A stretch of 62,311 nt of DNA, filler included, from Dimorphilus gyrociliatus (lineage: Eukaryota > Animalia > Annelida): assembly GCA_904063045.1 (NCBI GenBank). It is 3 parts of 3 records of this genome, joined end to end, with 100 filler letters (N's around TTAATTAATTAA, not from the genome) between each part and the next. Parts side by side here need not be neighbours in the genome. Positions count along the whole stretch, not along the records: positions 1 to 30,075 come from CAJFCJ010000138.1; 2 more parts are not named here. One strand, 5' to 3'. Position 1 is the first letter of the stretch. Every line of letters starts with the position of its first letter. This document shows, piece by piece, positions 3,001 to 24,599 of this stretch. Under the pieces are notes generated by a model. It saw only the letters and a list, made by a program, of their open reading frames with translations. It made no database searches and was not told the DNA's origin. Made by a program: the position numbers and the translations under genes.

Positions 3001-5256
3001 ATTAACAAACAACAACTTTTCTTCATCCATCATTGGTAAACACTCTCTTAGGGCACTTTTAGCAAAATCACAATTGGACAAGTCTGTCATCTACTCATTT
3101 TTAGAATACAAAATATATATATTTTTAATTTTTAAAAGTATCAAAATGAATAACCTGCAATTTGTAATTTTGTCTAAAACAGGAATTTTCTTTGACTACC
3201 ATTGAAAAATAATCGCAAATCGTTCGACAATAAAGAAAAAATTGAATTTTATCATCTTCAGATAAAAGTGTTAAAATTGTTCCATAAGTTTTGGATTTTA
3301 TAAAATAAAACAAGTTTATGTTATTTGTAAAAGATAAAAAATATTTATCTATTTCTCTTCCTTTATTAATTTCTATAAATTCAAAATCTATATAAAAAGA
3401 AAAACATTCAAACATTTGTATGATGTTCTTTTGAATTAGAAAAAAAACACCAATAACCTTCTAATTCGTGATAAAAACAGGTATCATGTTGAAATTTTAA
3501 AGATATTTTTCTAATTAATTTTGAATTTGTCGAGTTGATAAATACATATTTCAATTTTTAATGATATTGCAGTTGCATGTAAATTTATTTGAATTATAAA
3601 ACCACCTTTTTTGCAGATTTCTTTTCTGTTATTTAAGTGAGAAAATACTTTATAATACGTGAAATTTTTCTTTAAATATAATTGAAATGAGTTTAGAGGA
3701 ACACGATCGCTAAATATTTCTGGAATTTAATGATTTCATTTCTTAATTAATCTCTCTCCTTTCCAAGGAAATATCTACTCACTCATTGTATTACATATCA
3801 GATATGTTCCATTTACATCTGTATTATTTAAAACTTGTCTAATCTAATAGAAAAAAACTACTGTAATTTATTAGAAAAAAATTATAGCTGGTTTACAGTA
3901 AGATTTTTAGACTTGTCACCATTTTGTAGAATGAGAAAATGAATGGTAGATGATAATTTTAATTAAAATGTTACAAAGTCACTAGCTATACAATCTCACT
4001 ACAAGTAGTAAACAAAAATTTGTCTGTCTATGTTAGTAATATAATATCTTTCCCAAGAGAAATTAATAAATTTCAGAACAGATTCTCTTGTTATTGTTTG
4101 CATTAAATTTATTACAAAGATGACAAATTTGTGTTGATCACTACATATATATATATATAATTACAAAAAATTTAATTAGCATTAAAAACCTTATTTAAAG
4201 AATTACACGTAAAAGAACAAGCAATTTGCTTTTTAATATTAAAAGAAAATAATAATGGCATAATTCCAAAAGATTTTGATTTCATATAAAACTTGGGAGG
4301 TATGTCTCTAGTATGCAAAAAATAGTATCTCCAATATGGACTTATGGTATTATTTACTTTTATTACAAAATCTTTATAAAAGAGAATACTATATAACTAT
4401 TTCTTTATGTTAACACAAACAAACCATTCAACTGCTTAAACAAACAATTGAGCTTTCTTGAAATATCAATATTTTCAAATTTTACATCATATTCTTTATT
4501 TGGAAAATGCAAAAGTTTAACGCCAAATGTTTTATTATATTTAAATTCTTCAGTATAAGAGAACTCATTCTGTCCACAAAGTGTCCTCTGAAGTGATGGA
4601 TGATCTTGAATGAGATAATTTCTTCTTTGTTTTCTTAAAAATAAAATATAGCTATTTATTTTATACTCTCTAGCAAAAATGTCTAAGAGAAGACGAAAAG
4701 GGGGGAAAAGGAACGAAATGAGAAAGAAATATAATCTTCAATTTATCTCTATTTCTTGCCTTACATGTAGAACTTTTTCTGAAACATTTTAAATGAAGAG
4801 CTGGATATTTTTTTGAGATAATTAATTCTTTGAAATCATAATAACTATAAAACACAAAATTAATATGTCAAGCATGTTTTGAAAGAAACAAAATTATATT
4901 ATTTACAATATACAACAAGCTGTATTTGATTGTAGTATGAGAAAATGTTTACTACTTGATAAATCTTGTATTGTTGAAAGTGAAAAAAAACTATCATATC
5001 CTAATATCTTACACGTTTGATTTGAATTATTTCGAGATAGAATTTGATAAGTTATTGCATAAGTTTTATTATCATCTGGTAATTTTACTGTTAAAATTTC
5101 TTCCACACTTATTAAATCACTTTTCGTTATTGATAAATGAAAATCATTGGAGAAAAAGGTGTTATTTGTTGAAAAACTCGATCTAATTTCTCTATGACAA
5201 ATAATGAATTGATAAAGAGAGATCCAAAACTTGAAAAAGCTACTTTTCTTTTCCAT
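1..5256 (-). CDS. GRL101/LGR-like multi-exon receptor, 5' part: signal peptide, SRCR-like and C-type-lectin-like modules, at least 6 LDLa repeats; runs off the left edge
   Basis: LDLa motifs in minus-strand exons: CPLSGIYININNVCDGINDCLTNEDE, CHFVNERVSILKVCNYQNDCSDGSDEIYC, CKNKKCIHKNKVCNNERNCHDKSDE (hand translated ~870-960), CPYRHYLCHRDNFCISIEQICDGNHDCYLGDDETAC, ISIKKVCDGIVNCLNGSDEHLC. CTL-like DTCYYQFP..QNFCQ at 2053-2334. SRCR-like RFQIR..QRICSSFGF at 2565-2924. Hydrophobic N-terminus at 5256. Same domain order as the 7TM gene at 50.8-55.4 kb. The 7TM itself lies outside the window. Confidence 0.75.
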
Positions 5257-7456: not shown

Positions 7457-10400
7457 ATGGATTTTAAGAACGAAACACCAATGTCAAAGAACTCTGTTAT
7501 AGAGACGGCACAAGAGAAAAATTGGACAGATTTCTCTAAAGAGACAACATTTCACGGTGTAAAGAACATCTTTGCTAGAGAAACGTCGTTATTTAGGCGA
7601 ATTGGATGGGTATTTATTATTTGTGGAGCAATTTTTTTATTCTGCTATCAAGTTGTAAGAAGAGGAATGGACTATAATAAGAAAGATGTTACAGTAAATG
7701 TTGAAGTTATATACTCAAGAACTCTTGAATTTCCATCAGTTACTGTCTGTAATCAAAATAAATTCAGGTAAATTCATATACATAGAAAAGTGAGATAGAG
7801 CCTTTTCTTGTTTCAGATAAGATTTAAATTATAGGTTTTGAGTACTGATTTATGTCACACTCTGCGTAGTTAGTTTAATCTCATATATGAATTTAGGAAT
7901 GACACTAGGTTGAATAAAACTAGGCCAATATTCATTGGGTTCTTTATGAAATATTAATATAATAATTTGTTTCTATCAAAAGGATGAGTAGTACTGTTGA
8001 ATTGGGTTTATATGAATATATCAGCAACATTTACAATTCTGGAACTAATGAAAATAGTTCGTTTTATGCAAATTTGCCTGGAAATTTTATAAATGACACA
8101 GAATTTGTCTTCAATTACACAGCGCATAGAAAAACTCATTTTATATTTGACTGTCAATGGGCTAATAAACCATGTAAATCTGAATATATTTCAAAAACTA
8201 TTACTCAGTATGGAGTATGCTATACATTCAATTCTCCCTCTGCCCTTAATCAAACCAAGGGCTTAACTATTACTGAACCCGGAATGGCTAATGCCCTCTC
8301 TATTTCGTTCAACATTGAACAATACGAACACATGCCTGGACCCTTGAACAATGCTGGTGTGAAAATACTGTTACACGATGATTACAAAAAGCCACTTATA
8401 GCTGACTTAGGATTCACAATAGCACCTGGAATGCATACACTTGTTGGAATAGAGCGAATTGAATCTTATAAGCTTAGCGATCCATATGGGGAATGTGTGA
8501 AATCAGAATACAAATCACGCGCTGAATGTATAGATTATTGTCGGTTAAGTAGGGTGGCAGCTATGTGCCACTGTATTCCATTTGACGCTATTGTCATTCT
8601 AGGAGAGGATATAAAAAATTACAAGAGATATTGTAATTTATCAGAGACATATGGATGTGTAAGAGCATCATTAGAAAAAGTACTAAATGACAAAAATATA
8701 CACTGTTCATGTTCTGTTCCTTGTTCTCAGACTATTTATGAACCTAATCTCTCATTTTCATCAATATCAGGATTTGCAGCCAAAAAGCTGTTAAATAGAA
8801 ATTCAACGAAAATGAATGATTTGAAAGAAAATTTTTATAAAATTTTAGAAATTAGAGAAAAAGATGTTAAAAATAATTTTGAAAAAAATAAAGAAATAAT
8901 CTCTGAATTTACAACAAAAATGTTTTTTGTTTTACAACAACTTGATAATTCTTTTAGAGAATTCTTAACTAATCAAGAAGATGTTAAATTGTTTGATGAT
9001 CTTTTCATAGATTTATATAATATTATGATAAACTTTGGAAAAATGGCAGATTCTTTTGATTCTTATCCAATGAGACATATTAGACAACAACTGCTTATCA
9101 AATCGAATAAGATTTATCAATACAAAACAGGCCTATTTGGACCAATTTTAATAGAGAAGAATGAAATGATAACCAATTTGGAAGACTGTATAAAAGATAT
9201 ACACAAAATGAATGAAACAATTTTTACAGTAGCCTGTAATGAATTTATGAAACATTTCAAGTTTACTGAATATAGGATACCAGTCCAAGATTTTCGTCTC
9301 TTTTGGACTGTAGCTATAAAAGACCTTCAAGATCTATTAAGTAACACAATCCAAGCGGCAAATTTAAACAAAATGCATATTAATGAAATAGAAAGAATAT
9401 TTGGCATGAATATAAGTAATTCAAAATTATCATTTAATAAAATATGTCAACCATTCTACGATAAACTGGTAGATATGGAAAAATTAATGACATTTCCTAC
9501 TGTATTTCAGAATGATAGCTTTGCTAACATTGTTACAAAGATTAATACTACAATTAAAGCATTATTAAGCATGGACAAGAATTTATATCAAATTAATAAC
9601 TTCCATAATTCATACTGTCTCCTTGAAAACAGAATATTCGCTGAGATCGATAGTAGAATTAGAGAACTTTTAATTAATTCAGAAGATATTGCTTTTGAAT
9701 TATCAGAATTTCATAAATCAACAAAATCATTTTATGACATTCATCATTTGGTTCTCACAAAAACTCAACAATTTCAATCATATCTAAAAAAAAATTCCAC
9801 TATAAAAAAAGCTTATATATCAAATTCTCTCAGTTTGAATTGTTTACTTGATAATATCAAGAGTTTAAGGAATTTCTATGAGAATATACAATCGCAAAAA
9901 TCAGAATTTCTGAATAAAATAGAAAAAATTTCCAGAAAATTATCAGTTATTGAAAGTTATATTAATCTGATATTTATGTGGCCATTTGCAGTAAAACATC
10001 CAGACAATACAGATATTAAGTACAATAATGTAGATAAGGTCTTTTCAATGATTACTAAGAAGAAAATTGAACATAATCTTGATATAAATTGTCCTAAAGA
10101 AAGTTTACAGTACTTCTTAGGAGATACTTGGAGTACTTGTTTAAAAACATTTACAAATGGAATGATTTATCATAATCTTGATTTTCCTAATATTTCTCAA
10201 AGATCATTTAATGATGTTTTAAACAAGTACAATGACCTTCAACTTTTTATGAATGAATTTGAAAAAGCTTCAAAGGTTGATAAAAATTTTTTCAGGTAAG
10301 ATTTTTAATATTTCTCCTCCTTTAGAAACATTTACAAAAATGGATATAAACAGAAGGAATTTTGCAAAAGTTGATGTTTTCTACAAAGAAATGAGCTTTC

Positions 10401-10620
10401 AGAAGATAATACAACAGGAAAAATTTGCATTTCTTTCTTTCATCTCTGAAATTGGCGGATTTTTAGGTTTGGTTTTAGGCGCTTCTGTCATAACAATTAT
10501 TGAATTTATTGATTTTTTTGCCTATAAGGTAATTTTTTTACTGGATAAAATTATCTGAAATGTTGAATCATTCTTTTTCTCCCCTTTCAGCTTACAGCAA
10601 AAATCTCTAGAAGAATTTGA
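7457..10620 (+). CDS. DEG/ENaC (ASIC/FaNaC superfamily) channel subunit, 4 exons, ~942 aa, with a very large extracellular insertion
   Basis: Exons 7457-7767, 7983-10295, 10354-10528, 10591-10620 join in phase with GT-AG. Motifs: pre-TM1 TTFHG, TM1, FPSVTVCNQN, TQYGVCYTFN, Cys-rich thumb ending CSCSVPC, TM2 EIGGFLGLVLGASVITIIEFID (GAS filter). Confidence 0.93.
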
Positions 10621-11088
10621 GAAAGCTCAAGTAGCGACACCTGATGACAGTAATTTTCAAACCAATAGAAAGATTTTGTCACAATCTTTATCTGGGGAGA
10701 AATTTATTTTAGGGAGAGGAACAAAATATGTTTTATTTAGTAGCTGGCACTACTCTAACTGTTAACTTGGCAAAAAGAAATTTTTTGAAATAACTGAGTG
10801 TGTTACAGGCAATATATATATAAATGTTGTAATTAACTACATTATTAAATAACCAATAAGCTCATTTAGTCTTTGTAATATCCATCTTAAAATTAAATAG
10901 AGAATGTGAAATGAACAGTGAAATAGGATTTCGCATGGATGATAGAGAAAACGTTATCATTAGGGGATGCTCTCTCCAACTCCAGTTTCGTATGAAAACT
11001 TCTGACCTAAAATACATGCTTGCATAAAAATTTGAAAGTAACTATTTCCTATCTACAATTTGTTATTTATTCAAAAACTGTATTCAAT

Positions 11089-13173
11089 TTAGGAAAGGAG
11101 AAATTTTTTCTGAAGAATTTTCTTAATAAGTATACCTAAAGAAAAGATATCTTCCTTCTCCAATTTATTATCCAGTAGGTGTATGTTGGTCAGTGATATG
11201 ATAACAGATTGGCCAATTACCTTCAAAAGAAGAGAAAGACTAGTCAATTAATTAATTTCTTAGATAATTTACAATTTACATCGTAGTATAAATTATTCAA
11301 TCTAAAGGATCCATTAACTGAAAGTTTTCCTTTGTGAGCCTTTGCTAATACAGTAGTAATATTTTTAACAGTTTTCAAGTACAAATAGTTTGTAAAGAAA
11401 TGTTCATCAATGCTTAATTGAACAAATTTCCTATCAGGAGTAGAGAATCTTGTGTAACCGTTAGTTTCCATTTCTATAAATACTTCTCTACTTATTATTG
11501 TTTTTAGGAGGCTAATTTGATTCTCTACCAGTTTTCAACACGTTCTCTATAGCTATGTCAATACAAGTGGCTCTGCAAAAAAGAAAAATAATAAACAGAA
11601 AATATAATAAATAATAACTAGGCCTAGGGTAATGTGTACATTTTTCGATGAATTGATTTCTTTCTCCTCAGATATCTGAAATAAATCTCCTCAACTGTTG
11701 ATAGACACGGATTGATAATTGAACTCATTGGTAAAATTAGAATTATTATTGATTTGTAATTGTCGTATGTCATTTCAATGATTCTAATTAGTGATAACAA
11801 GCCTATTTGTTGTTGTTAATTATTTTTTTGAAGAAAGATTATATTATAAGCAGGAGAAGTGTGGAGGAAGAATATAAAGAATTTCTGCCTTCTTCCTCGT
11901 CACACATTCCTATTTTAAATTTACCAATAACACTTGCCAGTATCCATATAATACTACTAAAAATCACTTGAATTGCAATACTCAATCTGAGTTTTGTTAA
12001 CATATCTTGAAAGGTAACATTTGAAAATTGCGATAACGATTTCTTGATATGATAGAACGTTGCAATATAAAGTAAACAAGATAACAGATATAATACAGAT
12101 GGCGTTACAAGAAAGAATGTAAATGAGTACATTAATTCAACAGTTACGGTATTTGTAAAAAAACTCGGAAAACAAACCGAAGTTTCTCCGTAGAAATTCT
12201 ATAGTATTAATTGTCGAAGAAAATTTGAATTTAGACTGGTTCCTATTCGAAATACTATGAAAATATTTAACCTTGAAATAAAAATAGGGAAATAGAGATA
12301 AAAAACAAGAAAAAAATATGGTTAGAACTATAGTAAAGTGTTGAATGGAACTTTGGAAAATATTTTGTAAAGGGCTAATTACAATAAAATATCTTTCTAA
12401 TGTTAGAAAGAAGAAACTGACAGCTGCTAATAATAACGAAAAACCATAGTCCATACCAAGAATGTGACAGGTGACGCTATTGCGCCAATATTCATTGTTT
12501 TCTATGTAATTTCCACTAAAATATCGATCGGCAGTTGATACAAGAAGCAGATAGATCGTCATCATCAGATTACCAATGATACAAAGCCATACGTTAGGTT
12601 GTTGTTTACTTTTGTCAGATATTAATTTTAACAGGATTAGAAAGAAATTAGCAAATAGAGAAACCATTATATATATCAATTGGAAAGATTTTATAAAATC
12701 CGACCCATTTAGACTAGTACAGGATTTTACTATTCCACTCTTCTCATTTGTCAATCTACACTTGACAGAATTTCCCATATATTGCCAAAAAATGCAACAA
12801 AAGTAAAAGTTATTGACGATAACTTGTTCAATTTCACTCATAGATTGAATCATTTTGGGTAAATGTTCAATAGGCATATTTAAATTGTACAGATTTATCT
12901 CCTTCATTTTAAATAGATGAAATACTGATTTGTCAACATCATTTAAAATGCAATTGGCCATTATTAATTTTTTCAAATATTTAAAATTCTTTAAGTATAT
13001 CTCTTTAATGTGATTAATTTTCGAATAAGAAATGTCAAGGTAAATTAATTGAGTAGTTTTCAACTGTTGTAAAAAACTCAATGACAATACACGATTCTTT
13101 GGTAGCAGTAGAGTTTGTAAAAGTTTTAAAGGCCTATTCAAAAATTTTGCACTATTCGCCAATTGAGCAACAA
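11089..13173 (-). CDS. LGR-type (RXFP/GRL101-like) LRR-7TM GPCR with a spliced pseudokinase-like C-tail
   Basis: LRRs (LIYLDISYSKI, LKKLIMANC), hinge FYFCC, TM3 LTLERY, ECL1 ENNEYWRNSVTC, TM5-6 at 11839-12132, TM7 exon 11640-11802 (LPMSSIINPCL). Tail exons 11529-11572, 11280-11473, 11089-11220 ending EKEDIFSLGILIKKIL. True 5' end unresolved; a signal-peptide-like frame lies near 13270-13360. Confidence 0.85.
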
Positions 13174-14016
13174 CTGAAATAAAAATATCATTAAAAACTA
13201 CTCTAATTAGTGTGTTGCTTCAACTTTCAAAGTACTCTTTGATCTGATCATATCACTTGAAAAGTACATTTTTTGGTGTTTTTATTTGTAGTAAATAATA
13301 CTAATTGTAGTAAACAGACAACCAAGAAATTTCGGAAATTAAATTCATTGCAGTTTTAACTTTAAATCGCAGGGTTATAAAGTATAAAGTAAACTGTATA
13401 AAAACTGGAACACCTTGAATTTTGATAGGCCAACAATAAAAATCTTTTTAACTATAGATTTTCAGTAAACTTGGATTTATATAGGAATTTCTTTCATACA
13501 GCATTTAGACAAGTTTTTATATTATTTTCAAGAGGATGGATGTATTAATACGAAAGCCTTTTGTATTTTATTGTATTGTTTGTACACAAACAAGTGGATT
13601 ATTACTATTTTCTATACGAAGAAAAATTTTATGTCCCTTTTTTCACTTTTAAATGATTAGGAATGGAAAATTTCATGATATTTTCAATTGTTTTCCAAAT
13701 ATTAAGTGTTTTTTGCTTTAATTAATAGCTAAAACTTGTCATTTAATAATTTTATTTTATTTCATCTAGATATTTTTCTGATTTGAATGACTGTTTTTTT
13801 TAACAATGAGAACATTTATGGAAAAATAACTTAAGAACTTTGAGATAAACACTGGCTTCGGATAAAGTTTTACAATTAGTATTTTAGTCTGCCTTATTGG
13901 AGCTCTCACTGCAATATGGTGAAGAAAATGTAGATAATGTCATCTTTCTACCCTAAACTACCAGTTTACAAAGCATTAGTATGGATACGAAATAATATTG
14001 GCTTTTCCTTTTTCAG

Positions 14017-15690
14017 AATGCTTGATGCAGCTATGAGCACTGAATATCAGTGTGAAATGGAAGGATTATGTACATCTATTGAACAAGTTGACGATGGAAA
14101 ATTGGATTGCAAATATAAATCTGATGAAAATTTTTGTCCAAAACAGTGTTACATCTGTCCTAAAAATTGCATTTGTTCAATGCAAACAATTGTAAAGTGC
14201 TTAGGAAATGTTAAAACTTTTACGTATTTAAAGGTAACTAAATTTCAAAATGGTTGTTTGTATTCAAATATTGAAATAAGAAATTATTTGCAACTTTCTG
14301 GATTCTCAGATCTACAATATTTTAACTTCTATACAACCTATAATTTTTGCAGTTTGTCTCTTAATAATTTCAATATAGGACCTAATGTTTGGAGAAGAAT
14401 ATTTCAATTATGATGAAGAATGGAGAAAGAGCACAATGAAATTCATGTTAACATTTCTTTCTAATTTTTCAACAATTTTCTTATTTGGAAATGTTTTATT
14501 GATCAGATGTAATCAATTTTTAAGTATTCAATTCCCTTTTAAAGTGTATTTAACAAAGAAAATCGTATGCTCTATAATTCTTTTAAATATAATAATTTCA
14601 TTATCTATATCAATTTTACCTCAACTTTTTCGGGTGAAGGTCATCAAAATCCAAGGTCGCCGTTATGTTTATACAATATTATTGATGAAAATGATTATGA
14701 AAGTTGGAGTTTGGGATATATTCAATACGCAATTATTTACCCATTAACTTCTATAGTAGCACTATTTAGTTACTTGAAAATTTTTTACAAAATATTTCAC
14801 AGACTCAGTGTTGAATAAGCCAATTGCATGTTCAAAACAATATGCATTTACTAAGTTATTAGCTATTGATATTTGTTTAAATACAATTTATTGGATTCCA
14901 AATCCCATATTTGGTAAAAAAAATGTTGTCTTTCATTGAATGAAAAAATTGATTTTCTCTAATATTTTTCATAAACAAATTCGTATTTCAAGTCAAGTTA
15001 TGATATATAGTAAATTTATGGTTTATAGTATTTTTAACAATAATTTATTATCTAACTATTCCATTAACTTTTTCAATAAGCGAATGGAAACATTTTCTCC
15101 AAAGGAGAAGAATACAAAAATTAACAATGAAAAATCTATTGGAAAAAAATCTTGTTGAAAAAATGTTGAAAGAGAGTAAATATTTATTTCAAGGTTAAAA
15201 ATTCACTGATCTTTTCTTTCTTAAAGAATTTCCACTTTTTCAAAATTATAATCATCATTTTTTATGCTGCCCTGAAAAAGGAGTTGAAAATTTTTTTCCA
15301 AACAAAGAATTTTATATTAATTTTATCTTTTTGAAATGTATAAAGATCTATCAACAACTTTAAAGTTTATATATGATAAAAATATTTCAATCTTAGGAAA
15401 TATTCAAATGTCTGCTGTGACTTTTAATGTAAAAGAATTAAAAGAAAAAGCATTTCATTTATTTTGTCTTTTTTGGCAGGTAAATGAAAATGGCGACTAC
15501 AACTTTTTCTTAAATGCTAAGACATTTACATCAATTGAGAAAGATGATATTAAATCATTTGGTTACTTAATTGGAAAAATTTTAATTGATTATAAATTGG
15601 AATTTTTAAAAGAGTGCTGTTGAATAATTTAAATAAACTGCTAAACATTGACCAGATTGCTGTAAATTGAATACTAAAATAAATTTATTG
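14017..15690 (+). pseudogene. Disabled LGR/GRL101-like GPCR: LDLa + LRRNT + partial 7TM + pseudokinase-like tail
   Basis: LDLa YQCEMEGLCTSIEQVDDGKLDCKYKSDENFC followed by CPKNCIC. No LRR array or clear TM1. In-frame TAG at 14376-14378 inside TM2 (LLIISI*DLMFGEEYFNYDEEWRKS). Frameshifts near 14630, 14815 and 15335. TM6 IYWIP. Tail KDLSTTLKFIYDKNISILGNI ... EKDDIKSFGYLIGKIL. Confidence 0.75.
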
Positions 15691-16387: not shown

Positions 16388-19300
16388 TCAAGATTCACAT
16401 TGAAGTTTACTTTTTTTGAAATTTGTTGAGCCCTCTATACTATAAATAATATTATCTTTATATCTTTGATTACATTTCTTTTTTTTAATAGTAACAATCA
16501 CTGCAACTGTTATTGAGAAGACAAAGGCTAGTGATCCAATTAATATGCCTATTATCAGACCACTCTTTGATTTTTTTTTGAGTTTGTAGAAATGGGCATA
16601 CTTAACATCAACTATGTTGGATAATTGCCCTAAAAGCGATTTATCAGAGACGGCTCGTACTCCTACAAACCAAGATTCGTGCATTTTGTAGCCAATGTTT
16701 CTAAACGAAATAAGTCTGTTTTCAAATCCACCACGTTTACTCCTAACTTGCAGACCAAATCTAGTAATCATATTTTTTGTAACTTGTCTACAACTATTTG
16801 TACAATTTTCTCTAATATCGGAGATATTTTTGGCATAGTATATGATGTAACGATTAGCTAGGTAAATAACATAAATATCAATTTAACAATTTGCAGTAAA
16901 ACCATATATAGTATAATTTACCTTGACCTCCTTCAGCATAATTTCCAGTGGCAGTCCATGTTAAATTTAGAATGAAATCTGAACTTATGCTAACAACTTT
17001 AAGATCTGTTATTTTCCAAGGATTGTAAGGTACTTGTCCTTTTGAAAAGTTGGTATAAATCATTCCAACAGATACAACTCTTTCGAAACTTTCCAATAAT
17101 TCTACTTCTTCAATTTCTTTAGCTGAAAGTGAAGATTTACAAACACAAATGTATAGGCTTAAAAATATAGGATAACTAAATTTCTTATACTTGAATGATA
17201 ATTAACTGGAGGGGCACCTGAGCCATAGCTCCGGGACCGTTTTACTGCTCTTGTATGCCAACTATTACCCTTAACGGTGATATATGCATTAGCTGCCTTG
17301 TAGTTGATTTTATCACCATATATTCCAGAATATATTCCATCATTTTTTTTAACATCTGATCCTGTACCATCATCTAAGAGTTGGAATTTTCTCATATTTC
17401 CCGTATTGACACCCCTAAAAGCAGATACTTCGGCTCCTATGATAGGTCTATTACCCTTTTTAACAATTGCTTGAATACTTAGCATTGGTGGAGAATCTTT
17501 GAAAAAATGCACTCAATATTTAAACGTCAAAAAACTTATTATATCTTAAAAAGTATACCATTGTCATAATAATCTATGTAGTTGTGTGAAAGTGTTCCAT
17601 CAACGTATATCATTTCAGGATTATTCTTCTCAGTGTAACTTTCTACGGAATATCTCACAGAACAGTTTGTCAGTGACCCTCCTACCATTCTTATATTCCA
17701 TACTCCCGGCTAAAATCAATGGACCAACTTACAATTCAAGAAGAAAGGAGAATATATGAATAATTTTATACCTTTCCAGATGTTTTGAATGACATATAAC
17801 TTGAATTAAATTTTGTATCATAAACAATTTCGTTTTCTGCATTGAAAACCAAAACATTTGTCTTTTGACAAAATTTAGTCCAAAAAGTGAACTGTAAATA
17901 TCTTGACATGACACTGTTGATTAGTATGGTTCGTGTAAAAGTTCTAAATAAATATATGTTAATGTTTCCAGCAGTAATCTGTTTTTTATTTTCATTATGT
18001 AATATTTTAATGTTTTCAAAATAAAATATAGAGTCTTACTAAAAACGGAGCCAGACTGTCCTTTGGTACAGATTCTTTAAGTATCTCTTGCAATGAATCA
18101 GCCATGGTAAAGCCAAGGTACGTGGGAAAGTACGCATAGGGAAAAGTATATGCATTACCACCCGTACAATAGCTGAGTCTTATTAATTCTTCACTAATAT
18201 CCTGTTAAGAATTAAATCGTTATGAAAATATTGGTTATGGGATATATTCGATTGCCTACATCATCTTTATTAAGAGAATAAACCCTAACTCCGGATAATA
18301 TGAGTGTTTTTGCGATTTCCTGAGATATTGAATTTGTAGGAAACTCTTTAGTAGCTTTAAGGACGATTATGATACTACCCTTTGCTCCTTCAGGGTAATC
18401 TTGGAATAGCTAGATACAAAATGATTTCATTTCAGTGAAAAAATAAAATAAGATATTTAAAAAACTAACAGATAGTGCTTGAAGTAATCCAGGACCCATT
18501 GAACTGTTGATGCGCCTAAAATCTGGTTTATCAACTGGAATCAAATCTAATAGAGTTTTGATGTCGGACTGAGAGTTTACTGGCATAATTCTTTGAATAG
18601 TTTTAGTATAGTTGCGAAATTCAACCATGCCTACTGATACTCCTAACAAACTCCGACTTTGTAAGAATTTAAGAACAGCTTCGGCCCAGTAAGAAGAATC
18701 AACAGGTGGCTGTTGTTTTTTAAAATGCAAAATAAATTATTGCTTGTAGTTTAAATAGCAAAAACATATTCACATTAAAATTTCCCATTGTTCTATCAAA
18801 GAGTAAAACAATCCTTAAAGGTGGCTCTTGTATGATTGTAAAAGTCGGCTTAGTATTGGTATTTAAAGGGAGTTTTTTATTGATATTCTCAAAATCATCA
18901 TGTTCCATCATTACTTCCCAAGCACTTTTTCCATCACAAAACCGATTTTGATTGTTGTCTGCATCGCTGTTATGATCATTTTTGGATCCTACTCTATTAC
19001 AAAATTTTGCATTTTCCATAAAATGCATGTACATAATGGAAGCTTCATTTTCTTGAAATTTATTTGCCTTGAAAGTACACTTATCCACATTTACAATGGT
19101 TTCTCCTGTCAATGATTTTGTGCATTTGTTAGGATATGCACTTTTTCTATCGGTTGATAATTGGCAATTAGATTTATCATTTTCCCAGTTTAATTCGTCG
19201 TGTAGACCCCATCTTAAATGGGCCCATTCATGAACAAGTGTTTTGCCTGAAGGACAAGAAAGAAATAATTGAGTATCAATAGCATAACATATAGATATTG

Positions 19301-19909
19301 TAGCTTGATTATTAACCAATTGGTCCAAAATATTTCTCTGAAGCACTTCTATTTTTTAAATAATCTTTACTAAGGTAAGTATATTTTCCTGGATTGCCAC
19401 ATTTTCCTCCCTAAATATTTTAATTTCATAAAGAAATTTTGTATTTTCTAAGATTTTAAAACTTGCCATCATCACTGTAAAAGGATTATCTCCCCATTCT
19501 AATGTTGAGTTTCCAACACGGATATGTCCTTTATCAAAAGTTTGCCAAGTAGATGGTTCGGCTTGTATATTTTTCCATTTTCGTGGAATTAAAATTTTAA
19601 CCTCTTTAAAATATACCCTATGTTCTGTTAATTGAAAGAGCTCGGATGATGCTTCAGTCAAGTATTCCTAAGTTACGTTATAAGTGCAAAGATATTCAAT
19701 GTTAAGTTATAGATTAACAGTACAACCTTAATTTTTGAAATGATTCCTTCATCTTCTTCATCAGAATCTATAGTAACCAACAAGTCATGGTATCCTCCAT
19801 TTATAAGTACCACTCTATTTATAGGTAAGAGAGCCTTATTTTGAAAAGTACATGAACTTAGACAAGTTCCAAAACTTGTCAACAGCAAAAGAAGCTGAAA
19901 TAGCGACAT
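16388..19909 (-). CDS. CLCA: CLCA-like (calcium-activated chloride channel regulator) zinc metalloprotease-vWA-FnIII-TM protein, multi-exon
   Basis: Signal peptide; NGGYHDLLVTID; RVYFKEVKILIPRKW; VHEWAHLRWGLHDE zinc motif; SIMY and FCDGKSAWEV; vWA start LRIVLLFD; LLDDGTGSDVKKNDGIYS; PWKITDL..LTWTATG FnIII; C-terminal TM GLIIGILIGSLAFVFSITVAVIV. All are CLCA family hallmarks in the correct order. Confidence 0.92.
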
Positions 19910-21809: not shown

Positions 21810-23165
21810 TTACATTGAGTTATAATACTGAAAATAAATAAATAATTCGTTATAGAATGATTGCAAATTTGATGAATAAAATAGTGAGAATGATTCACAA
21901 TTGAAATTTTCACAATTGCAAACATATAAGCATTTATCATGCATATCTTTCTCTGTGAAATATCCATCGTTTGTGTCCAATAGTTTACATTCAGTAATAT
22001 ATTCCTCTCCATTTTCTGCTTTGACTGAGGTTATAAAATAAAAAATTGCTTTTTTACAGGCATTTTCAATAGCTACTCCTTTTAGGACAATTTGAAAAGA
22101 TGATACATTGTATTTGGATATATCTGATGTGTATTTTACATTTCCATTACAATCTTTTGTTTGAATATTAGTGACATAGAGATAATTGTTTTCGTTATGA
22201 AATATTGTATATACTTTCACTGTTTGGTTAATACTATAACCAAAAACGTCCAATTCACATATAATAAGCCGTGCAGAGTTGGAAGTAATAAGAGCTGATA
22301 AATAACGACCAACAGTTGATTTTGGACATCTCATTGTCAAGTAGAGAGGTAATTCTCCATCGTAATAAGCGCATTCTGAAGGGATTGCAGGTGTGGGAAC
22401 ACTATCATTTTTAGAAACAGCTATACGAACATTATGTAATGCATCACCATTTCTTCCTCCTGAAATTATTGAAACTGCGAGAACAAAGCTGATATTTTCC
22501 AAATCAACTTTCCACCATGGTTGATCTTCCAGAAGGGATTGTGAGCATAGAATACCATTTTGGCTATATATCCAATTAATTTGACCATCAACTGCTGAAG
22601 GGGGATCTAGTGTATTAAAATAACTACTTGCTGATACGTTTTTATATTTAGCAATATTTGGCAAACTCCATATTTCCACTTGACACAAAGTTATAATCTC
22701 GTATCTATCAATATAGAAGATAACTGTACTTGCATAATGAGGCTTGTTGACATAGTTCATTGTTTTTGATTGTGAATTGCCAAGAGGATTATCAAGTGAA
22801 GAAAATTGTTGAAATTGATTGGTATCTATTGTTGAAATATCCCTAGATAATTTAGTTCCAACAATTAAATCATTTAATCTGTCTGCAAGACTTGCTCTAT
22901 TCAAAATCCTGATAGTTTGAACAATATAAGATCTTTCAAATTGAATTATATACCACGGTTTATATTGGCTTCTCGAATGGGAACACGTTCTGTATGAAGC
23001 ATGCTGAGAGGAAAATTCCCCGTTAACAGCAAAGTCACTAGAACTAGTTGGCCACGTAGAAGGCAATAGAGTATATTGTTTCAAAGCTATATTTACGTGT
23101 TTATATTTCTGTGAATTACTTGTATTTAAAAGAAGTATATAGATCCAAAAGATAATTTGAAACAT
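21810..23165 (-). CDS. Secreted tandem F-type lectin (fucolectin/FTP, F5/8C-like) domain protein with a Cys-rich C-terminal domain; intronless
   Basis: Signal peptide from the Met at 23165 (MFQIIFWIYILLLNTSNS). Two FTP domains: AVNG..CSHS..KPWY..LNR..DRL..TLCQVEI and AVDG..CSQS..QPWWKVDL..GRY..ICELDVFG. About 130-aa C-terminal domain with C..C..CLYVCNC..C. Confidence 0.85.
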   Translation of the reverse strand: MFQIIFWIYILLLNTSNSQKYKHVNIALKQYTLLPSTWPTSSSDFAVNGEFSSQHASYRTCSHSRSQYKPWYIIQFERSYIVQTIRILNRASLADRLNDLIVGTKLSRDISTIDTNQFQQFSSLDNPLGNSQSKTMNYVNKPHYASTVIFYIDRYEIITLCQVEIWSLPNIAKYKNVSASSYFNTLDPPSAVDGQINWIYSQNGILCSQSLLEDQPWWKVDLENISFVLAVSIISGGRNGDALHNVRIAVSKNDSVPTPAIPSECAYYDGELPLYLTMRCPKSTVGRYLSALITSNSARLIICELDVFGYSINQTVKVYTIFHNENNYLYVTNIQTKDCNGNVKYTSDISKYNVSSFQIVLKGVAIENACKKAIFYFITSVKAENGEEYITECKLLDTNDGYFTEKDMHDKCLYVCNCENFNCESFSLFYSSNLQSFYNELFIYFQYYNSM

Positions 23166-24599
23166 TTGTTCACCTTGTCCCTTCCTAATCTTCTTGCTAA
23201 GCAATAAAATGGCTGCCAGTTGCAGCTTTGTTCACCACATTTAATATTCATATTTTTTTTAAAATTATATTGTTTATATACATATATTATATTCATTTTA
23301 ACAATTTATATTCAACTATTAAATTCTTTATGACTCTTTTACTTAATACATTGATTAAATGATTCAAGAGAATCAATAATGGATAGAAAAATAGATTTTC
23401 TTATATTTCACTGTACATTGAAATGTACATAAAACAGAAATCTTTCAAATACAATATGCAGGAATGCATTCAGAAAAATGAACTATACACTATTCATACT
23501 ACAATTTTTTCAACCTATTTTCAATATCAGTCACACAACAACTATAAAAAACAGAGTTCATTTATTCATTGTCTAAGAAAATAGATCACGTGTTTTCGAT
23601 TTATCAGAAAGAAAATGATACCTATTGTAAAACATCAATATTTTATCGAATAAGAGATGTAGAGTTGGAAATGAAAAGAGTTAATAGAAACCATCACTAT
23701 TGTTGATTTTGGGAATCTGCCTATCAAATAGATGGGTAATTTCTACCGCAATTCTGCAGAAATTTCATGTGTTGGAAAAATATTTTGTTGAATTATAAGA
23801 GAACTAATACAACGATAGTAAGACCATATATATTAGGACAAAAGTGTGATTAATGCCGAAATAATGTTTTACCAAAACTAAATTAATAGGCTAACAGGTT
23901 AATAAGCAAAGGTATTAATCTCCAAAACTATCTGGGATTTCTTCATATGTAAATAGGATTAGATACTAATTTCTTTAAAAGTAACTAGCAGACTATATGT
24001 GGCAATTTTGTTACACATTTTAACTTAGTTCAGAGTAAAACCAACTTTGGAAGTAGACAAATCTTACTCTGATATTTTTTATTATAAAATAAACATTACA
24101 ATTTTGCTGAAGAGAGGGAGATTATAATAAGAAAACTTTAATTGAGATTTGTGTAAATAAAATGATAACAGATTTGGATTATCACGAAAAAGTCTGCATT
24201 AATAAGAATTTCAGAATACCAGATTCAATTACAAATTTTTTATTTAAACGTTTCGTAATATCAGGAAAGATGTTCTTTTTGCACAAAGTTTTTTCTCTAC
24301 AGAGTATACAACATTAACAGTTATTGATTTGGAAGATTACAATATGGAATCTTATAGATTAAACTTTCTTCAAAATCATTCTATCAAGATGGTGAAATTG
24401 CATGATTGCATCAATATTCAAAACAGTCTGTAGAGAAAAACCTTTTGTGCTTAAATTTCCGTAAAATTTTCATCAACAACTCCTTCAGGAAAGACTCTCT
24501 CTCTGTTCTTCCCAACGAGGCTAGGACAGTTGATTTCTTTAAACAATACAGATGGCTCTACTGTTGTTCAATGCTCACCTTGGCTTTTTGACACATATC

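Follow-up and report, generated by a model that had tools for sequence, protein, structure and literature searches.

The window analyzed here is a gene-dense stretch of 62,311 nucleotides of Dimorphilus gyrociliatus DNA (three joined parts of assembly GCA_904063045.1), with a G+C content of approximately 27%. Its minus strand carries, in the part taken from CAJFCJ010000138.1, a gene for a leucine-rich repeat (LRR) receptor of the LGR/GRL101 type, one of the G protein-coupled receptors (GPCRs) with seven transmembrane helices (7TM; TM1 to TM7). The last three small exons of this gene, hereafter D, E, and F, encode a tail that we show to be protein-coding, splice-joined to the receptor, and retained across old paralogues in two genomes. 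Directly after helix 8, it would append to the receptor a conserved cytoplasmic module some 125 to 135 residues long. The spliced model, whose tail exon coordinates, GT-AG boundaries, and phases were all as originally drawn when checked against the sequence, yields, with a provisional 5' end, a protein of approximately 565 residues from these elements:

12272..13162, minus strand: large exon with the LRR ectodomain, cap/hinge (FYFCCIFWQ), and TM1-TM4 with ERY (open reading frame [ORF], language-model [Atlas] features, HMMER, hydropathy)
12199-12271, minus strand: predicted intron of 73 nucleotides (nt) (spliced model)
11925..12198, minus strand: exon with the cysteine of the second extracellular loop (ECL2), TM5, and TM6 (spliced model; donor 11925 is used in an RNA contig)
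11640..11802, minus strand: exon with TM7 (..INPCLS..) and helix 8, ending in phase 2 inside an ATG codon (RNA junction 11640|11572; same phase-2 end in paralogues L001, L006, and L009)
11573..11639, minus strand: intron 1, 67 nt, GT..AG (spliced in an RNA contig; absent in paralogue L013)
11529..11572, minus strand: tail exon D (I-ATCIDIAIENVLKT), phase 2 to phase 1 (codon usage; homologous exons or sequence in paralogues)
11474..11528, minus strand: intron 2, 55 nt (an alternative acceptor would make it 11483-11528, 46 nt)
11280..11473, minus strand: tail exon E, 64 amino acids (tblastn to L001, family profile, best codon log-likelihood in the proposed frame)
11221..11279, minus strand: intron 3, 59 nt, phase 0 (RNA contig; position and phase common to all paralogues)
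11089..11220, minus strand: tail exon F, 43 amino acids and a stop at 11091-11089 (alignment, PDB profile matches, conserved C terminus)
11007..11135, minus strand: intron of 129 nt whose removal truncates exon F after ..DIFSLG and links it to a short alternative end, QKFSYETGVGESIP and a stop (RNA contig junction, depth 24)

On sequence grounds, the receptor is an LGR/GRL101-type, rhodopsin-class GPCR, as the original prediction had proposed for the LGR part. The spliced model has seven hydrophobic segments by hydropathy, with ERY after TM3, the ECL2 cysteine, and NP in TM7. In Atlas language-model features, the large exon groups with LGR4/5, GRL101-like, and glycoprotein-hormone receptors (172-181 shared), and an exhaustive HMMER search returned 846 matches, the named ones being GRL101-like receptors of Aplysia and Patiria (about 1e-14) and proteins of Dimorphilus, Littorina, and Ylistrum, mostly spiralian relatives. 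The gene shares with GRL101 and the other type-C LGRs (LDLa-LRR-7TM, relaxin-receptor-like) an LRR ectodomain and a rhodopsin-class 7TM with ERY; LDLa modules, also part of that architecture, are seen here in the neighboring paralogue (E 0.012) and, at L001, L007 (the same gene as L006), L009, L011, and L013, upstream of the paralogue. It differs from the type-C LGRs in reading NPCLS instead of NPxxY in TM7, in having few LRRs, with no LDLa module found in the 700 nt upstream of this copy, and, as a family, in the extra conserved module of about 125 residues on three exons. Pfam LRR_4 and LRR_8 score weakly and below the cut-off in the studied copy (E 0.04-0.15), LRR_8 is found in the paralogues, and precomputed 7tm_1 matches exist for the paralogues.

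Conservation of the tail across the receptor family

The paralogous loci, designated by L numbers, come from Logan assemblies of one species with 23% G+C, at least 99.9% identical between samples. The approximately 45 top HMMER matches are AT-rich ORFs called at the exon level, with 26-36% identity to the query. The paralogue contigs read LDLa exons, an LRR-TM1-4 exon, and then a tail homologous to that of the studied gene. Exon E of the studied tail finds L001 by tblastn at E 4.7e-10, and exons E and F are also present in L006, L009, L011, and L013. Exon E follows the pattern ..SID..FF..[YW].KC......H....[ST][LV][ND]G....NN[IL].[FY]D. When L001, L006, and L009 are read by eye, the same gene plan emerges, i.e., a TM7 exon ending in phase 2, an exon D of 14-16 residues running to phase 1, an exon E running to phase 0, and an exon F that reaches its stop soon after ..ILQK[KR]. 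Homologues of exons D, E, and F occur in L011 and L013 as well. At 4800-5010 (plus strand) of L013, a single uninterrupted ORF covers TM7, helix 8, and exon D without intron 1, which was either lost or never gained, so the presence of this intron varies within the family.

Every family gene with enough downstream DNA carries the tail (8 of 8), and profile hidden Markov models (HMMs) of the tail exons also pick up L016, a member on which they were not trained, at E 1.2e-4. Mean pairwise identity is 24% in the tail (28% in exon F), 30% in TM1-4, and 29% in the LRR part; since the tail diverges at nearly the rate of the receptor, it evolves like a structured domain. In the window, the tail HMMs match nothing beyond the studied gene and its neighbor, and they find no match among the best 150 of the 846 receptor matches, which include the named GRL101-like receptors. 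Word-indexed homology searches with the 341-amino-acid ORF, the 75-amino-acid tail ORF, and the exon E alignment returned nothing or only the exon E ORF of L002, and a metagenome scan gave no match. Exon-level gene calls in public collections omit the tail entirely, a warning for annotation, which can overlook such tails when it proceeds exon by exon.

The neighbor is a second, degenerate copy in divergent, head-to-head orientation:

13778..15623, plus strand: degenerate paralogue whose LDLa/LRRNT exon is followed by TM2-TM7, interrupted by a stop and frameshifts, and by a homologous tail (tblastn, Smith-Waterman, RNA junction)

It lacks the LRRs and TM1. Its TM2-4 match the studied gene by tblastn (E 2.6e-6), and its tail, encoded at 15336-15428 and 15480-15620 around an in-frame 51-nt intron (15429-15479), is colinear with the studied tail (Smith-Waterman z 5.3-5.7). 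The family HMMs score the neighbor at E 8.8e-10 and 1.6e-15, values that are not independent because its own tail was among the training sequences.

RNA evidence was drawn from contigs with spliced junctions assembled from one public run, X1. Junction 11640|11572 confirms the 67-nt intron 1 with its phase-2 donor inside the ATG, and junction 11280|11220 confirms the 59-nt intron 3. The third intron proposed originally, the 55-nt intron 2, is retained in X1, with an unbroken contig over 11276-11572, and its position and phase 1 recur in five paralogues (L001, L006, L009, L011, and L013). The stretch holds 16 GT..AG pairs that would restore the frame, so sequence alone leaves intron 2 unproven; codon usage favors the proposed frames of exons D and E. 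It is the conservation in the family, namely, phases 2, 1, and 0 and the L013 ORF, that settles the exon model, and with it the claim that a C-terminal module is spliced onto the receptor, which holds across the family. The acceptor itself may lie at 11483|11482 (46 nt), as exon E starts with [VF]-x-x-[FL]-[LI] in the family and the resulting V-F-I-E-M start fits this pattern better than the start given by 11474|11473.

We consider it probable that the tail is a conserved, noncatalytic, spliced-on module, and at most a remnant of a kinase domain.

Kinase likeness of the tail

The original prediction read in the tail kinase subdomains VIa, VIb, and IX, and hence a pseudokinase. Only the last of these subdomains found reproducible support. 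Exon F has the consensus EKxD[IV][YF]SxG...L, in which E, D, G, and L are invariant (E..D....G......L, within EKEDIFSLGILIKKILQKK in the studied gene), a helix resembling kinase subdomain IX with its D.[WY]S.G motif at the start of αF. Its seven-sequence profile gave 20 matches to PDB at E<=10, of which 18 are protein kinases (PERK 0.066, CTR1 0.11, and Pto 0.12, besides SymRK, FERONIA, and TAK1), all aligned where the P+1 loop ends and αF begins. A combined tail profile yielded 18 matches, every one of them a kinase and at subdomain IX; over both profiles, E values ranged from 0.066 to 1.7. As far as these profiles reveal, the likeness to kinases is reproducible only in this last exon. For VIa and VIb, the signal did not hold. 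An exon E profile of five sequences matched only GCN2 kinases, over the hinge-αD-αE region (E 0.6-1.2), and these matches disappeared with seven sequences or a trimmed profile and added nothing to the combined profile. Exon E does show the conserved motif H....[ST][LV][ND]G....NN..D, whose spacing is plausible for a catalytic loop.

The best kinase match (E 0.07) is borderline. The kinase motif was originally proposed from this very stretch, so the profile match is not an independent test. The AlphaFold and Foldseek check suggested with the original prediction, run separately on the isolated neighbor tail and on exon E, the latter supported by a seven-sequence alignment, produced low-confidence models (predicted local distance difference test [pLDDT] scores of 54 and 65), and the poor model had 0 Foldseek matches in PDB, an uninformative outcome. 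Searches of PDB with single sequences or a three-row profile retrieved no kinase, and Atlas features of the studied exon E gave noise and retrotransposon gag. From the sequence comparisons, descent of the tail from a kinase is a tentative idea that we hold to be somewhat less probable than its negation. The specific scenario of a mini-domain derived from the kinase C-lobe, in which an αE-to-αF core, stripped of N-lobe, activation segment, and αG-αI, would survive to serve as an intracellular docking or signaling module of a bilaterian LGR/GRL101-type family, is possible to about the same extent, or slightly less.

A true folded pseudokinase domain, fused to the LGR in the manner of the kinase homology domain (KHD) of receptor guanylyl cyclases, is unlikely. 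It can draw on the subdomain IX matches to PERK, CTR1, Pto, TAK1, SymRK, FERONIA, and GAK, on the five-sequence exon E profile that saw only GCN2, on Atlas features of the neighbor's tail, which are mostly fragments of kinase, Kdo, and APH proteins (top 0.91, 135-150 shared, below the reliable range), and on a motif, H...[ND]G....NN..D, spaced roughly as YLH...HRDLKxxN..D. Size and content speak against it. Kinase domains comprise 250-300 residues, approximately 45-60 of them separating subdomain VIb from IX. With about 125 residues in all, the tail has only about 50 before the αE-like helix, and 24 residues by hand count from the end of exon E ("VIb") to the D of EKxD ("IX") in the studied copy, L001, L006, and L009 (23 in the neighbor), too few to accommodate β8-DFG, the activation loop, and APE. 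The tail stops with αF: αG-αI are absent, and all members end about 10-25 residues past the αF-like motif. The glycine-rich loop, VAIK, the αC glutamate, DFG, and APE are found nowhere in the family alignments, in agreement with the original statement that DFG, the Gly-loop, and the catalytic Lys are missing; N-lobe motifs as a whole are absent. No Pfam kinase family (Pkinase, PK_Tyr_Ser-Thr) matches any exon of seven members at E<=10, the exon E signal is gone with seven sequences, and Foldseek, on its poor model, found nothing. The presumably noncatalytic module is better described as, at most, a drastically reduced C-lobe remnant than as a pseudokinase domain.

Two atypical kinases considered for comparison have no bearing on this finding. 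For E. coli K-12 yegI (L017:10147-10986, minus strand), annotated as encoding a Ser/Thr kinase, the first 280 residues of the protein have no Pfam match at E<=0.001, and a Trichormus plasmid kinase related to YegI shows a Pkinase match over the C-lobe only. Both were dropped as hhalign references, being devoid of HRD, DFG, and IX motifs.

Transcripts of the studied copy and its degenerate neighbor

In X1, the studied copy is mostly mis-spliced or alternatively spliced. Intron 2 is retained and, within 11573-11924, the TM7 exon is left out of some transcripts (11925|11572), with a frameshift as the result, whereas the TM6/TM7 intron is kept in others; the canonical 11925|11802 junction appears in no X1 contig. 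The 129-nt intron at 11007-11135 is spliced out, which removes the C terminus ..GILIKKILQKKFLLS. These features count against the reading of a conserved, spliced-on tail, and this particular copy may be drifting toward nonfunction. At the corresponding place, L001 has no donor for the 129-nt intron, so this form is an alternative or unproductive isoform, and the C terminus conserved in the family is ..LGILIKKILQKKFLLS followed by the stop, as originally drawn. The poor splicing may reflect regulation by unproductive splicing, or the copy may be heading for the fate of its neighbor.

Such transcripts would also fit a rival reading, in which the downstream ORFs lie outside the receptor protein. 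With intron 2 retained, the receptor would end ..KTGRESN and a stop, and METNGY.. would start a separate small ORF or belong to the spliced 3' untranslated region of a decaying gene. The X1 contig that keeps intron 2, an ATG at 11471, the many GT..AG pairs that could restore the frame by chance, and the disorder of the transcripts would all suit it. We nevertheless judge it very unlikely, given that exon D, running from phase 2 to phase 1, leads into exon E in five paralogues, that TM7 and exon D are a single ORF in L013, and that exon E of the paralogues does not begin with an ATG. Furthermore, the depths of the upstream junctions in X1 (9.6 + 11.8) add up to about that of the tail contig (24), which indicates that the tail is transcribed from the receptor promoter and not from one of its own.

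The neighbor is transcribed at a low level (junction 13929|14017), and its tail overlaps, in antisense, a contig of high expression (depth 121), presumably the 3' end of the CLCA-like gene. It also inspired the weakest of the alternatives, that the tail is what remains of a partial tandem duplicate of the ectodomain end (last LRR, cap, hinge, and start of TM1), an idea backed by alignment of the neighbor's read-through ORF with N-terminal residues 80-179 of the studied receptor (Smith-Waterman z 5.2), by tblastn (E 0.001), by a family N-terminal profile (p of about 0.001), and by an inverted DNA repeat (12783-12808 with 15453-15478), and which we rejected as having hardly any probability left because the family alignment places the stretch driving the match, FHLFCLFWQ, in the neighbor-only, in-frame 51-nt intron with no counterpart in other members, and because the studied tail itself shows no significant similarity to the N terminus. 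That intron, read as ..KAFHLFCLFWQ, mimics an LRR C-terminal cap motif well enough to pass shuffle controls. The resemblance is a chance or low-complexity match and a warning for tests of this kind in AT-rich genomes.

Placement among known receptors and other genes in the window

The preferred reading thus remains that of a large lineage-specific GRL101/LGR-type family (LDLa, LRR, rhodopsin-class 7TM) whose members carry a conserved, presumably noncatalytic module after helix 8, i.e., where G proteins, GRKs, and arrestins engage. From this position, the module would most likely act in docking or regulation, either linking the receptor, once activated, to a partner inside the cell or controlling trafficking or dimerization/oligomerization. 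LGRs, relaxin receptors, and GRL101-type receptors are thought to signal via G proteins, arrestins, or coreceptors, with unstructured tails. The dozens of members with the same structured module on dedicated exons point to a lineage-specific wiring of these receptors to the cell interior. The earlier statement that known LGRs end in short tails was probably too strong, as LGR4 and LGR5 have tails of roughly 80-130 residues. A limited literature search found no conserved structured tail on LGR/GRL101-type receptors. The tail architecture is real and, within that search, unreported; a pseudokinase domain is not established.

Fusions of GPCRs to kinases, originally said to be known mainly from oomycetes and Dictyostelium, are known from oomycetes and amoebozoans (GPCR-bigrams of both groups, RpkA) and have more recently also been reported in choanoflagellates and sponges (GPCR-TKL/K, GPCR-TK) (PMC12716839, PMC6033456, PMC5784254, PMC3206951). 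Such fusions (GPCR-TKL/K, GPCR-TK, GPCR-PIPK) are defined by a 7TM followed by a C-terminal kinase domain recognized by databases (PMC12716839). The studied receptor resembles them in having a 7TM and then C-terminal kinase-related sequence, and the PDB matches of its last exon include CTR1, TAK1, Pto, and SymRK of the tyrosine kinase-like (TKL) group. However, known fusions combine full kinase domains recognized by Pfam/InterPro with non-LGR 7TMs, whereas the studied tail is half that size, lacks catalytic and ATP-binding motifs, and is recognized as a kinase domain by no Pfam model. If the tail were derived from a kinase, GPCR-kinase fusions would come to include LGR-type receptors, here in an animal for which the closest named relatives are largely spiralian. 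It would then be the first GPCR-(pseudo)kinase fusion beyond protists, choanoflagellates, and sponges, and an extreme reduction of the kinase fold that shows how far a C-lobe can shrink yet stay under selection. If it were not, the family would offer a new small domain with a clear alignment, well suited to structural work.

By analogy, the logic of the module might resemble that of the guanylyl cyclase KHD or of KIND domains. The KHD is likewise a noncatalytic, kinase-like element near the membrane in a receptor, and the degenerate catalytic loop-like motif of exon E (G for R or D) seems to recall the HGNLKSSN of KHDs. KHDs are nonetheless complete bilobal domains of approximately 250-280 residues followed by a dimerization helix and the cyclase, features of which the studied tail has none. 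The KIND domain (kinase noncatalytic C-lobe domain) of SPIRE, PTPN13, and KNDC1 comprises about 200 residues and keeps αE to αI. Its likeness to the tail lies in the idea of a C-lobe-only kinase derivative as a protein-binding module, and no tail exon has a Pfam match, KIND included.

Other genes in the window include one, also on the minus strand, with several LDLa modules at 21-1349 (Pfam E 1e-10 and 2e-5), which runs off the left edge and might form the 5' portion of a further GRL101-like receptor. To the left of the studied gene, at 7457-10558 on the plus strand, an ASC/ENaC-type channel gene has a central ORF of 771 amino acids that matches Pfam ASC only over residues 27-286; about 480 Asn/Lys-rich residues precede its last transmembrane exon (10253-10558) and amount to an extracellular domain insertion of unusual size. 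On the other side lie two ordinary neighbors on the minus strand, the CLCA-like gene at 16388-19909 (Pfam CLCA E 4e-24) and a gene at 21810-23204 with NedA-like and F5/8 type C galactose-binding domains.

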